Shown: in pieces, positions 1-35,181 of the stretch
Layout: each line of letters opens with the position of its first letter
Numbering within the stretch: the first letter of the stretch is position 1
Sequence record: MW825358.1
Reading direction: 5' to 3' (one strand)
Length of the DNA: 64,000 nucleotides
Notes under the pieces: model-generated
The model's database searches: none
The model's input: only the letters and a program-made list of their open reading frames with translations
Told to the model about the DNA's origin: nothing
Program-made: the position numbers and the translations under genes

Positions 1-450
1 TTCATGAGCAGCACGCTCACCTCCAAGCGTGGCTGGTTGCGCAAACACGTGTTCGGCTCCCCGTTGTACTTTACCTTCCGGGCAGTGATTTCCTCGCTGT
101 CTGATGAGCACGAGTATGATGAGTTGCACCTGCCGTGGGGTGTGGCAGTGTCCACCTATGCACTGCACCTGACCTCGAAGATGTATCGGATGATTAATGA
201 AGAAACCGGTCGTCCGTTCACACCCAATGAGGTGCTCAAGCATCTGCGTGAGCATACCTTGCGGTATAGCCCCTTGTTGGACCGGCTCTTTGATGAGCTG
301 ATTGCCGAATGTCCATACAAGGGATTGCCAGTGCTGTTCAACCGTAATCCTTCACTGGACCGCGGTTCGATTCAGCAGTTCTTCGTGACCAAGATCATCA
401 AAGACCCGGAGATCAACGCCATCTCTATGTCTGTGTTGACGCTTAAGGCT
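1..450 (+). CDS. Non-virion RNA polymerase beta' N-terminal subunit (phiKZ gp55-like), exon 1; 5' end lies outside the window
   Basis: NRNPSLDRGS motif resembles beta' NRxPxLH. The frame reads ...SVLTLKA up to 450 and joins PNADFDGD at 862 after intron removal. Confidence 0.9.
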
Positions 451-861
451 CTTTAACGGGTCCTTCCGACAGTAATGTCGGTCGATCATCTCTCTAATTG
501 CTGGGACCTCTGACGCCAACTATCTTCGGATAGGCGGACACACTACTAAAGCGGAGTGGGTAACCACAAACGTCCAGTTTAAATAACGTGTGTCTTTTTG
601 CAGACAATCAGCAGCCAAGCTTCCTAACGGCATTACAAGTAACGTCGCGGTCACATGAAACCGCAGCCTAACAATACGGGTGACGTGAAGTAATTGATGC
701 GTGGAAGAAGGTTCATCGACTAGCCGAAAGGCGTAGGGTGCAAGCGCATCCGAAATGGGAGACTTCCGCGACGGCGGAAGAAGATATAGTCAGTACCTAG
801 ATGTGAATCTAGGCGGGAGTCAGCGCTCCGGGTCCGTGTAGCGAACGGATTGGACAAATAG
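451..861 (+). mobile_element. Group I self-splicing intron without an internal ORF
   Basis: Exon ends in U and intron ends in G. Core elements: P AATTGCTGGGA (496-506), Q AATCAGCAGC (606-615), R GTTCATCGACTAG (711-723), S AAGATATAGTC (781-791), with GACTA/TAGTC P7 pairing. Splicing restores KAPNADFDGD. Confidence 0.93.
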
Positions 862-28225: not shown

Positions 28226-28690
28226 ATGAGTAACCCTATTTCTGAAGCCTTGCTGCCGGATGAGACCAAGGCAATGCTGGCCAATGTGCGTGAGCGCGTT
28301 GTCAACTACGTGAGCAAGATGGCCCCAGGTGTGGCTATCTCAGATGCCGATGGTGCCACCCAGCAAAAGCTGCTGTGGACAGGCGTGTTGATGTACGTGA
28401 TGAACCTTCCGGCCACTCAGTTTGAGTACGGCTGGGGTGAGTTCTTGAAGCTGGTCCAAGAGCACCGTAAGGGTGCCTTCTCGCTGGCCTACGTCAATCG
28501 CTTCCAAGCCAACTTGCTACTGACCTTGCCTGAGCGCCGCAACTTCCAGCGTCTGATGCATCTGGCAGAAAAGACCTGCGATCCCAAGGCTCGCCCGCTG
28601 GGCCTGAAGCAGATTGACATGCGCCTGATTCTGGCTGGCTTACCTAGTGAGCCGGTGCGTCAGAAGTTCATTGCTTTCTACCAGATCTAA
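28226..28690 (+). CDS. Conserved jumbo-phage hypothetical protein
   Basis: 154-aa ORF followed by a hairpin. Confidence 0.7.
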   Translation: MSNPISEALLPDETKAMLANVRERVVNYVSKMAPGVAISDADGATQQKLLWTGVLMYVMNLPATQFEYGWGEFLKLVQEHRKGAFSLAYVNRFQANLLLTLPERRNFQRLMHLAEKTCDPKARPLGLKQIDMRLILAGLPSEPVRQKFIAFYQI

Positions 28691-28694
28691 AGTG

Positions 28695-28735
28695 CGACAT
28701 AAGCCCCTGCCCATAAGGGCAGGGGCATTATGACG
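28695..28735. terminator. Bidirectional hairpin flanked by CATA/TATG
   Basis: GCCCCTGCCC-ATAA-GGGCAGGGGC. Confidence 0.75.
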
Positions 28736-28876
28736 TTGATGGGTACGTAACCCTAACCCCGGATAGAGGTTTCTTGGTGACCATGGACTGGTATTTAGAC
28801 AGTCGTGGGTCGTTGGAGTTGAAGGCCGCTAGTTAGGACCGGGTGTGCTCCACATGGTTACCATCACCGTAACAAT

Positions 28877-28933
28877 TTACGTGAAGCACGTAGCTAGATC
28901 GAGTTCTTCGGTCTTTAAGGACTTACCGTGCAT
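28877..28933 (-). pseudogene. Displaced duplicate of the last 18 codons of the vRNAP beta' gene
   Basis: Encodes MHGKSLKTEELDLATCFT*, versus in-frame MHGKSLKTEELDLETCFS* at 28933-28989. Confidence 0.88.
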
Positions 28934-30234
28934 CAAGAAAAACAAGTTTCTAAATCTAATTCTTCTGTTTTCAAGCTTTTTCCATGCATGGCAGCCATGA
29001 AAAGCGACAAGAAGGTCGAGCCGATGTCCGAGGCGTAAGTGCCTAAGGCTTGCGGGGTGGAGGCAATGCGCTCACCCATGCACTTGGCACAGAAGTTTGC
29101 ACCGCTCGTCCGGCAATACACTGGCGAGCGTACCAACAAGGTCTGACCCACCAAGCCCTTTAAGGACTCTTCGGTCAACACCACAGGCTGACCTTTCTCG
29201 ATCCGGTAGTTACCCACGTAATGGGGCGCCTTGTCCTTGGTCATCAACACCGTCAGTCCCAACTTAGAACCACAATCGTCTTCGGAGACTTGCGAGTTCT
29301 GGAAGATACGGTTGTTGAACTTGGTTTCCACGCCGCCCAGTGCGGTCTGTGCACCACGTGAGAAAGAACCATCGCGCAGCTGGTTGACCATGGCCGGTAA
29401 CTTGGAGATATCCCAAGCCTCATCTAGCGAGGTCGGGATCAACTCACCTTGGACACCAAAGCCTGCACTGATGCCCTGCATGATGAACACCTTCAGGCGC
29501 ACCACGTCGTAGGACTTGTCCTTGATGTAAAAGCGCTCACCTGGATCGCCTTGCATCCACTTGCGATCCATCTTGGTCAGCTCATCCAAGATATTGGCCA
29601 GCACCACTGGATCATGCAGACGATCCTTGTTCTGGGCCAACAACTCATCACGGCGCTGGATCATGGCCGGGTCTGCGGTCATGGTCTTGCGCGTGGCAGA
29701 CGGCACACACAGCTGAGAAAACCCAGGCAGCTGACCGACAGCTTCACTGAAGAGCTTGTACTCACTGGTGCGAATGGGCCGGGCCTGCAACGGAAGCTTT
29801 AAGGCTTCTTCCTCAGGCATCGTGTCATCCCAGCGATCTTGAATCTGCTTTTCGATCGTTCCGATCTTGACCAGACCGGTCATAAAGCCGATCTTGCCAT
29901 GGAAGGGATGATTGAGGATCAGTTCGTTGACCAGGGCATTGCCGTAGGTGGTCTCCACCCGTTCGGTCACATTGGTCATCTGGCCAGGATTGAGTACCAG
30001 CTTTTCTAAGGGACGGAACAAGGGCTCACCGGGCATGGCGTCCTCAATGACCTCAAAGCCCTCATCATACTCCTTGCTGTAGCACGCATAGCGACCATCG
30101 GGCAAGGTAAACAAACCAAACGGGTAAGGATGCTCCCCACCCGGTCGGGTAATGGAGAACGCCTCAAGCACCCAGCGCTTGTGGAGGTAGTTCTCATTGC
30201 CCATGCAGATCAGAAAGTAATCTTTCTTGAACAT
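28933..30234 (-). CDS. Virion RNA polymerase beta' middle subunit (phiKZ gp80-like)
   Basis: GSFSRGAQTALGG bridge helix, DDCG...RSPVYC...FCAKCMG zinc site, LFMAAMHG trigger loop. Confidence 0.88.
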   Translation of the reverse strand: MFKKDYFLICMGNENYLHKRWVLEAFSITRPGGEHPYPFGLFTLPDGRYACYSKEYDEGFEVIEDAMPGEPLFRPLEKLVLNPGQMTNVTERVETTYGNALVNELILNHPFHGKIGFMTGLVKIGTIEKQIQDRWDDTMPEEEALKLPLQARPIRTSEYKLFSEAVGQLPGFSQLCVPSATRKTMTADPAMIQRRDELLAQNKDRLHDPVVLANILDELTKMDRKWMQGDPGERFYIKDKSYDVVRLKVFIMQGISAGFGVQGELIPTSLDEAWDISKLPAMVNQLRDGSFSRGAQTALGGVETKFNNRIFQNSQVSEDDCGSKLGLTVLMTKDKAPHYVGNYRIEKGQPVVLTEESLKGLVGQTLLVRSPVYCRTSGANFCAKCMGERIASTPQALGTYASDIGSTFLSLFMAAMHGKSLKTEELDLETCFS

Positions 30235-33788: not shown

Positions 33789-33911
33789 ATGATCGTCTAT
33801 GAAGGTCCCGGCAACTTATTTGAGTGTGGGGTACAAACCATCACGTGCAGTGAGAGCGGGAGGCAATGCCTCCCGCTCTTTTTATGGTTCCGAATAAGTT
33901 CACACCCTTAA
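33789..33911 (+). pseudogene. Orphaned original 5' end of the macrodomain gene
   Basis: GGAG RBS; MIVYEGPGNLFECGVQTITCS matches MIIYEGPGDLFSCGMQCITCS at 34723 (16/21 aa), then runs into a terminator. Confidence 0.88.
33853..33883 (+). terminator. Intrinsic terminator at the edge of the HNH insertion
   Basis: AGAGCGGGAGGC-AAT-GCCTCCCGCTCT-TTTT. Confidence 0.85.
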
Positions 33912-33958
33912 TATCAAATTGAGAAGGACTGTCAACCTTTTACAATTAAGGGAAACAA

Positions 33959-34726
33959 ATGAGAATTGATGTTACCGGCCAGCGTTTTGGACGATTGGTG
34001 GCTCTTAGTCACCGCCAGGTCGCAGTGGGGAATCGCAAATATATTCGCTGGCTTTGCCGGTGTGATTGCGGTAATTTGACAGAAGTACTTCTGTCAAATC
34101 TCAAAAATGGCAACTGCTCTAGTTGCGGATGTCTTAGTAAGGAGCGAGTTGCTTCTTTAAATAAGACACACGGAATGTCAGGCACAAGGGAGTATGCGGC
34201 ATGGGGCGCCATGATCTCACGATGCCACAATCCCAATGCTCAGGCCTTGGATAATTACGGCGGACGGGGAATTTCAGTTTGTGAGCGCTGGCGCAGCTCC
34301 TTTGAGAATTTTTACAATGACATGGGCCCTCGCCCCTCTGATGAACACTCCATCGAACGCCGCAACGTCAACGGTAACTACGAACCGGGTAACTGTTACT
34401 GGGCCACTGCCGATGTTCAAGCCAACAACCGACGGAACACCCTGTATGTTGAGTACCTAGGGGAAAGACTCACCGTAATGGCCCTTTCAGAGAAAACGGG
34501 GGTTCCTTATCAAAAGCTGTATGAAAGGATCTATCGGTTGGGGCAGTCGGTTGAAGAAGCCATCAGACCAGATCAAGAAGTGAAGTTATACGAAGGGTTC
34601 GGTAAGAAACTTAGTCTCAAGCAATGGGCGGTGGAACTCAACATGAACTACTACACGCTCTACGACAGGTTCAAAACCCACGGCTCGATTGAAAAAGCAG
34701 TAAAGAAACCTGTGAGGTCCAGATGA
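33959..34726 (+). mobile_element. Free-standing HNH homing endonuclease
   Basis: RIDVTGQRFGRL, CRCDCG, SCGC, YGGRGISVCERW, SIERRNVNGNYEPGNCYWAT...QANNRR, with C-terminal HTH-like repeats. Confidence 0.9.
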
Positions 34727-35181
34727 TCATATACGAGGGACCGGGAGATCTATTCAGCTGCGGCATGCAATGTATAACTTGCTCGATAAATACTGTCGGT
34801 GCGATGGGAAAAGGGATTGCATTGGAGTTCAAGCGTCTAGTGCCAGGGCTGTATGAATACTACCGCCAGCACTATCATGATAAACCTCCACTGTTTCCCA
34901 GTGTCAATAAAGTGCTAGTCTACAACGTCGATGCCGAGCGCAAGGTGTTGTTACTGCCCACCAAAGACCACTGGGTATATCCTTCCAAAGTAGAACTGAT
35001 TGATCGCAATTTGCAGGTGCTCACCGAAACCTATCGGGAGCTTGGAATTGAATCCCTAGGACTGCCGTTGATTGGCTGCGGCCATAATACCGGACAGCTT
35101 TCCTGGGAGCGTCAAGTTCGACCTTTGGTCTATCAGCACTTGGATCCCTTACCGATCCCTGTAAAGATCCTGACAGGCTGA
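34723..35181 (+). CDS. Macrodomain ADP-ribosylglycohydrolase (DarG/Appr-1-p-like)
   Basis: GDLF, INTVGAMGKGIALEFK, PTKDHW and LGLPLIGCG motifs. Confidence 0.88.
   Translation: MIIYEGPGDLFSCGMQCITCSINTVGAMGKGIALEFKRLVPGLYEYYRQHYHDKPPLFPSVNKVLVYNVDAERKVLLLPTKDHWVYPSKVELIDRNLQVLTETYRELGIESLGLPLIGCGHNTGQLSWERQVRPLVYQHLDPLPIPVKILTG

Follow-up and report, generated by a model that had tools for sequence, protein, structure and literature searches.

The 3' end of the gene for the C-terminal beta' fragment of the virion RNA polymerase (vRNAP) in Xanthomonas jumbo phage vB_XciM_LucasX occurs twice in tandem, and we posit, with a probability of roughly 85%, that this tandem was left behind by a free-standing GIY-YIG homing-endonuclease cassette that has lost its nuclease. 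The window, i.e., the whole stretch of DNA that was analysed, comprises 64,000 nucleotides of the 305,651-bp record MW825358.1, and subtracting 62,000 from a record position gives the window coordinate. The host gene of the putative cassette, LUCX_91 (28933..30234, minus strand), encodes 433 amino acids. According to our analysis, the cassette would have targeted the coding sequence of the trigger-loop histidine (ATG CAC GGT AAG...) near the 3' end of this gene, and would have consisted of the synonymously recoded last 18 codons with their own stop, followed by a nuclease gene. Insertion would have moved the native tail downstream and put it out of frame, the recoded tail would have kept the essential gene whole, and the nuclease gene would subsequently have been lost in the LucasX lineage and in the metagenomic relative L008.

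On the minus strand, the in-use tail (28933..28989), a putative cassette-derived replacement 3' end, comprises 18 codons and a TGA. It is followed by the displaced native tail (28877..28933, minus strand) of 18 codons and a TAA, which lies out of frame with LUCX_91. The original prediction of a tandem, recoded duplicate with a one-base overlap between stop and ATG proved exact on this strand, the A being common to the in-use TGA and the displaced ATG (TGATG). Its count also agreed with our recount by hand: 16 of the 18 residues are identical between the tails and 12 of the 15 degenerate shared codons differ. The serine codon belongs to different codon families, AGC in the in-use and TCC in the displaced copy. 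A tblastn search found just two copies of the tail in the whole LucasX genome, by which a paralogous polymerase as tail donor was ruled out. LucasX alone matched in two places among the 134 cultured-phage records that match the tail, and a scan of the whole LucasX genome yielded only one further partial duplicate of a gene end, at the 5' end of a macro-domain gene.

The in-use copy had been described as AT-rich and foreign-looking, and its composition fits this description. Its GC3 is 3/18 (0.17) versus a genome coding mean of 0.68 and a value of 0.61 in the displaced copy. Only 0.006% of the 77,205 18-codon windows in 208 probable LucasX genes have a GC3 this low, and the in-use tail has the lowest GC3 among the 208 gene ends, the next lowest being 0.33.

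Homologues of LUCX_91 were found by tblastn in 314 jumbo-phage records, where they are labelled as RNA polymerase beta/beta' subunits, one of them as 'vRNAP beta' subunit 2'. A phmmer search of the LUCX_91 protein against the PDB returned noise only, and a family profile was required. The profile of 31 homologues aligns with residues 778-936 of E. coli beta' (E about 1e-5 to 8e-4) and also with phiKZ gp74. The alignment stops at His417, which is invariant across the 31 homologues and lies opposite the His of ...MRTFH, the beta' trigger-loop His936, so that the trigger-loop label originally given to this residue is borne out by the comparison with bacterial beta'. The candidate breakpoint within the MHGK codons falls in a conserved stretch of essential coding sequence, as expected of a homing target.

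The relatives of LucasX indicate which copy is inherited. Single tails are found in RTH11, the closest cultured relative (70% amino acid identity), and in the loci L005, L006, L012, L013, L014, L034, L035, L037, L038 and L039. The proteins of these relatives end about ten residues past MHGKSLKT, and nearly all of the genes, those of RTH11 and nine further single-tail relatives, read CAC GGT/GGC AAG TCN/AGY, as does the downstream copy in LucasX. Because the downstream codons match the single tails of relatives, we regard the downstream copy as inherited and the in-use copy as the newcomer. The proposal that the displaced GC-rich copy is ancestral thus agrees with both the codon style and the sequence of the single tails (RTH11, L012, L037 and others); the AT-rich end is not ancestral among the relatives, and nuclease-containing alleles exist.

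The derived codons CAT GGA AAA AGY are common to the in-use tails of LucasX, L008 and L036 only. Over the first 13 codons, these three recoded tails are mutual best matches (0.76-0.81), and their mean identity to all other tails is 0.61; judging from these sequences, the three are of shared origin. L008 (75% amino acid identity) carries a nuclease-free tandem, in which the in-use tail opens with ATG CAT GGA AAA AGC and is AT-richer, and the old-style tail behind the in-use stop shares 84% identity with the only tail in L012. The recoded tail is present in LucasX and L008 and absent from nine other clade members. The protein tree of 36 homologues has a polytomy as its backbone, on which one gain and two gains of the recoded tail in LucasX and L008 are indistinguishable. 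A scan of IMG/VR for the recoded-tail pattern found none, and the sole match to the pattern in JGI metagenomes (L015) was rejected as a chance match in an unrelated gene.

The third recoded tail (CAT GGA AAA AGT) is part of a longer allele in L036, a metagenomic relative with 66% amino acid identity. The 16-nt junction TCTTGATGCACGGTAA is identical in L036 and LucasX. In L036, the old-type sequence breaks off after ATGCACGGTAA, 11 nt past the new TGA, and about 440 nt with an open reading frame (ORF) follow. The order is new tail, TGCACGGTAA, a 131-aa ORF, the full native tail and then, as elsewhere, the 3' UTR with its terminator. The native tail opens with a 9/11 copy of the 11-nt sequence, and the nuclease remnant lies between ATGCACGGTAA and ATGCATGGGAA. 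This second tail shows 0.77 identity to the tail of L038, a relative with 84% protein identity to L036 that groups with it in the tree (98/91 support). L038 has a single tail and neither recoded tail, insert nor nuclease. The cassette is therefore polymorphic in its presence, as befits a mobile element, being found in L036 and absent from L037, L038 and L039, and we posit that L036 gained it horizontally, since its close sister L038 is without it.

The 131-aa ORF of L036 matches the homing endonuclease family phrog_314 (E = 1e-5), the I-TevI DNA-binding domain PF20987 (E = 8e-4; its 19.7 bits fall short of the 27-bit cut-off) and, at E = 0.02, NUMOD1. Its homologue P0121 passes the PF20987 cut-off with 29.3 bits. 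In a collection of 5.8 billion proteins, the ORF aligns at 40-47% identity with the C-terminal two thirds of proteins of 200-202 aa, which are encoded on 220-240 kb contigs and carry both PF01541 (GIY-YIG) and PF20987. The N-terminal ~77 residues of these homologues, including the GIY-YIG motif, are missing from the L036 ORF in the alignment, and the ORF is probably a truncated GIY-YIG/I-TevI-like homing endonuclease. Within the last ~20 codons of the polymerase gene, the identity of L036 to L038 drops and that to LucasX climbs, with a boundary that is not sharp. L036 and L008 read GGI where the others read GSI, and the AT-rich third positions of L036 reach about 14 codons upstream. These observations are only suggestive of an upstream co-conversion tract; in a sliding comparison of LucasX with L008, no 3' tract stood out by a sharp rise in identity.

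An intact nuclease, one of these full-length homologues, is found in L040, a 240-kb IMG/VR phage contig whose polymerase fragment is 40% identical to that of LucasX. Here the recoded in-use tail is followed by a 40-nt spacer, an intact GIY-YIG ORF (P0124; 22.8 bits against PF01541, cut-off 22.6) and the displaced old tail. The stop codon of P0124 directly abuts the displaced tail, which starts just past the counterpart of ATGCAYGGNAA. In translation, the L040 tails read KSLKTAPYNFKKMIF and KSLKTAKYDFKKMIF; the residue is the same at 13 codons, of which only 5 are identical. The junctions in the two alleles differ, as the L040 nuclease abuts old-tail position 12, whereas the L036 nuclease is preceded by the 11-nt fragment and followed by a complete tail; a single insertion history yielding both junction types was sought and none was derived. 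L042 and L043, viral contigs of 116-150 kb, carry a homologous polymerase gene and, starting about 100 nt behind it, a 450-aa ORF with repeated GIY-YIG modules from this nuclease family. This ORF (L042 1685-3037, identical in L043) appears by eye to contain three tandem GIY-YIG-like modules followed by a DNA-binding region, of which Pfam scored one module (residues 204-279). A displaced tail is not recognisable in these two contigs.

The predicted order of new end, nuclease and old end is hence realised in L036, with a truncated nuclease, and in L040, with an intact one. An intact-nuclease allele in the LucasX clade itself was not found, the nuclease of L036 being truncated and the polymerase of L040 only 40% identical. 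LucasX has neither a PF01541 match nor a DNA-binding module of the I-TevI/NUMOD type nor a homologue of P0121-P0125 across its 305,651 bp, and Pfam and PHROG indicated no nuclease in the neighbouring genes LUCX_89, 90, 92 and 93. Since the GIY-YIG gene is absent, we consider LucasX to carry the footprint of the cassette and not a member of it. The later loss of the nuclease, as originally proposed, is in line with a LucasX genome free of any GIY-YIG gene next to alleles in L036 and L040 with a nuclease between the tails. The proposed origin from an endonuclease cassette is supported, as the alleles have the expected structure, with the correction that the nuclease is of the GIY-YIG type and neither of the HNH endonucleases in the window. 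A group I intron at the tandem was rejected because Rfam is blank over 28650-29050 even at E <= 1 and the copies abut without a spacer. We likewise rejected a diversity-generating retroelement, as the differences lie at synonymous positions and are of all kinds, among them C>T, T>A, G>A, C>A and TCC>AGC, instead of being confined to adenines.

How the nuclease was lost may be read from the junctions. The native tail of LucasX opens with the 11 nt ATGCACGGTAA (28923..28933, minus strand), which in view of the L036 and L040 junctions are the candidate insertion breakpoint as well as the candidate deletion repeat. The likely route of loss would be recombination between two 11-nt repeats, ATGCAYGGNAA, on either side of the nuclease in alleles of the L036 type, and recombination of ATGCACGGTAA with ATGCATGGGAA would give exactly the LucasX junction, in which the new tail abuts the old. 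Cleavage of the naive allele is predicted near ATGCACGGTAA^G, because the breakpoints of L036 and L040 coincide there and because of the general behaviour of I-TevI-like enzymes (PMC8393795). Resistance to cutting would result from the recoding together with the insertion. With respect to timing, four-fold degenerate sites are saturated between LucasX and L008 genes (0.37 identical), yet the displaced tails of the two are 68% identical by hand count, with mostly third-position differences. The displaced tails would thus have been coding for most of the time since the split, which points to a recent displacement in each lineage.

One aspect of the tails needs an added assumption under the cassette origin. 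New and old tails agree with each other in each genome (...TCF in LucasX, ...H.SLT in L008, KTAELDL in L036) although their codons differ, and tails within a genome are closer in amino acids than orthologous copies. The new tail of LucasX has TGT TTT where the native one has TGC TTC and other cassettes have TCA CTG or TCT CTT. The new tail may have gained the lineage-specific residues of the native tail later by point mutation. The likeness may reflect either such host-restoring mutations, i.e., adaptive convergence, or donors that were close kin. A more tentative proposal, to which we give somewhat less than even odds, is that the GIY-YIG nuclease and the recoded tail act as a natural cleave-and-rescue weapon of jumbo phages that, during mixed infections, cuts the vRNAP gene of naive competitors, an action shown for the intron nuclease of PhiPA3. 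In that case the LucasX tail would have been retained as an immunity allele against relatives armed with the nuclease. If so, the convergence of the tails would mark the extreme C-terminus as a lineage-specific polymerase contact.

Among the alternatives, the order of events could have been reversed, with the duplication or the recoded tail arising first as a resistance allele, for instance by recombination with a lower-GC relative, and the GIY-YIG gene colonising the redundant and still cleavable old copy later in some lineages such as L036. The tandems of LucasX and L008 without a nuclease fit this order, as does the L036 remnant, which lies behind the initial 11 nt of an old-type tail, as if it had homed into the displaced copy. 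However, L038 is without both recoded tail and nuclease, which implies that these arrived together or in quick succession, L040 pairs a recoded tail with a nuclease in an unrelated lineage too, and the complete native tail behind the L036 nuclease would not be expected from simple homing into the old copy. We therefore consider the reversed order improbable. Plain tandem duplication of the gene end in situ, followed by divergence without any mobile element, would be in keeping with the different, in-frame 90-nt tandem duplication in L004, L009 and L010, which indicates that the region does duplicate. It has very little probability in our estimation, as it would have to account for a serine codon-family switch, a GC3 of 0.17 in a genome at 0.68, almost fully changed synonymous sites with just two residue changes, and nuclease genes between the copies in relatives. 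The recoded type also occurs in L036, which belongs to a well-supported separate clade and has a sister without it.

That both tails are used, through frameshifting or TGATG termination-reinitiation giving an alternative C-terminus or an 18-aa peptide, could be suspected from the overlap of the copy 2 ATG with the copy 1 stop in LucasX, and from the old copies of LucasX and L008, which have kept 68% identity with mainly third-position changes despite the 0.37 identity at four-fold sites. Recent displacement accounts equally well for this coding-like conservation, a slippery site is absent, and the frame relation is inconsistent, copy 2 lying in frame +2 in LucasX, in frame +1 and without an ATG in L008, and being cut after 11 nt in L036. 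On these frames we rejected a frameshift or reinitiation that gives two C-termini, and a function for both tails seems highly unlikely. Laboratory engineering might be read into the wholesale synonymous recoding and into the NsiI (ATGCAT) and HindIII (AAGCTT) sites of the new tail, but the copies differ in two amino acids and LucasX is a soil isolate that was sequenced directly (PMC9009655). The published assembly rests on 250-nt reads at about 238x (PMC9009655), and window positions 28300-29700 show zero differences from a Logan assembly made independently from what is probably the source run. Since the duplication is kept in that assembly and a like architecture occurs in two unrelated metagenome assemblies, from environmental samples of other studies, an assembly artefact or an engineered construct can practically be dismissed. 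A nuclease cassette that has lost its nuclease is thus the reading we prefer.

This reading is further supported by a second locus 5 kb from the tandem. The macro-domain gene (33789-35181, plus strand) is interrupted after codon 21 by an intact HNH endonuclease gene (33959-34726; phrog_374, E = 2e-70). The native 5' end of the macro gene persists upstream as a remnant of 21 codons with a terminator behind it. At the HNH stop, which it overlaps in ATGA, the gene starts anew with a duplicate of these codons that is recoded and AT-richer, a serine codon having changed from AGT to TCG. In L008, L009 and L010 the macro-domain gene is uninterrupted. A cassette with an HNH gene and an AT-richer recoded gene end would follow the same principle as the one proposed for the polymerase tandem.

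Downstream of the displaced tail lies a 3' UTR with a terminator (28700..28876, minus strand), conserved in an alignment of eight loci, the terminator being annotated in the record. It would represent the right-hand homology flank of the cassette, and it also follows the native tail in cassette-free relatives. This 3' UTR, about 160 nt between the polymerase gene and its terminator, is conserved among relatives that are saturated at synonymous sites (L004 2078-2235, L008 5358-5520, L009/L010 5393-5545, L012 4303-4450, L034 4303-4465 and L035 2840-2975). The conserved blocks are TGTGGAGCAC, CTTCAACTCC..CGACC and GGTCACCAAGA, with hairpins that show some compensatory changes. The element may be a structured RNA; no Rfam family matched it over 28700-28876. 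RTH11 and L005 have a different conserved element at this position. The ~90-nt tandem duplication in L004 (1930-2077) and in L009/L010 (5270-5392) comprises the tail and the start of the 3' UTR. In the corresponding proteins P0003-P0005 (460-463 aa) the first stop has become GAA, which places two tail motifs in frame, and the sister of P0005, P0006, is without this duplication.

Further features of the surroundings were noted. Positions 28480-28715 of the window are identical to a 236-nt contig from the 2019 soil-metagenome run X2, which suggests that LucasX or a near-identical relative was present in an independent sample. Between the polymerase gene and the LUCX_90 homologue, relatives carry one or two genes of 330-350 aa and a BubE-family gene (L002 4517-5551, L009 5614-7086, L010 5616-8153), which are absent from LucasX (28226-28877). 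The 330-350-aa genes have a faint match to a phiKZ internal protein, and LUCX_90 is annotated as a DMT permease, for which Pfam offers no support. The sole Rfam match in the window is a group I intron (RF00028, 54.7 bits; 441-813, plus strand), which splits the gene of another RNA polymerase subunit shortly before the NADFDGD codons, with the exon resuming at ~860.

When homing endonucleases invade essential genes of phages, they usually do so within self-splicing introns or inteins. The GIY-YIG family described here seems to enter the trigger-loop region of the vRNAP gene without an intron, carrying a recoded replacement for the codons that it displaces. The four alleles may be seen as stages of a life cycle, namely intact (L040), truncated (L036), deleted (LucasX and L008) and empty (L038 and others). 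They offer a concrete case in which competition and gene exchange mediated by nucleases can be tested in jumbo phages, both nucleus-forming and related ones, and they would explain odd scars in the form of a duplicated gene end that annotation pipelines overlook. For LucasX, a biocontrol candidate, the tandem would be a harmless scar.

Several known systems share parts of this arrangement. Synthetic Cleave-and-Rescue (ClvR) drives link a nuclease against an essential gene to a recoded rescue. The vRNAP element similarly links a nuclease to a recoded, presumably uncleavable version of an essential gene. The ClvR rescue acts in trans and spreads by killing non-carriers, whereas the likeliest mode of spread for the vRNAP element is self-copying into the cut site, with the 'rescue' limited to the final 18 codons. 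Prophage e14 and phage 21 integrate into icd with a phage-borne alternative 3' end. There, too, an element swaps in a synonymous-variant 3' end and the original end remains beyond it, but these are whole prophages that use an integrase, and for the vRNAP element we propose nuclease-driven repair, an integrase being absent at the LucasX tandem.

Closer in enzymology are the Seg proteins of T-even phages, free-standing GIY-YIG homing endonucleases capable of 'intronless homing' (Belle et al. 2002, via PMC12908238). Like Seg, the nucleases of the LucasX relatives have, in their full-length form, a GIY-YIG catalytic domain together with a probable I-TevI-type DNA-binding domain; they have no intron, are present or absent between close relatives and adjoin the presumed cut sequence. 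Unlike the Seg genes, which are intergenic and depend on target polymorphisms, the vRNAP element enters the end of an essential coding sequence and brings recoded codons. In jumbo phages, homing endonucleases in polymerase genes are known as intron passengers (PMC11620839; review PMC12908238), among them the intron-encoded HNH endonuclease gp210 in the vRNAP gene of PhiPA3 (PMC11620839). Like gp210, the vRNAP-tail enzyme would be aimed at a catalytic, conserved codon block of a chimallivirus-type vRNAP subunit, and both could act in the competition between co-infecting jumbo phages. They differ in that gp210 is an HNH nickase within a self-splicing group I intron of the beta subunit, whereas the vRNAP-tail enzyme is of the GIY-YIG type and without an intron, the gene being preserved by a recoded end and not by splicing.

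The closest counterparts are organellar. In fungal mitochondria, the replacement of gene ends by free-standing endonuclease genes is known. A study by Paquin et al. from 1994 is said to describe a free-standing endonuclease gene in Allomyces atp6 that carries a replacement gene end, with the native end downstream. For Tremella mitochondria, partial foreign gene replacement with terminal duplication has been summarised (PMC8393795). In a limited literature search, we found no description from phages of a recoded tail combined with a GIY-YIG gene. As in the organellar cases, the nuclease gene would travel with a foreign terminus, which keeps the host gene whole and leaves the native end as a pseudo-fragment. 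The differences are that the host is a bacteriophage, that the gene encodes an RNA polymerase, that the replacement spans 18 codons, and that in LucasX the nuclease has been removed so that the copies abut. We therefore rate the tandem of LucasX and the alleles of its relatives as a phage case of a gene-end-replacing nuclease whose kind is known from organelles.
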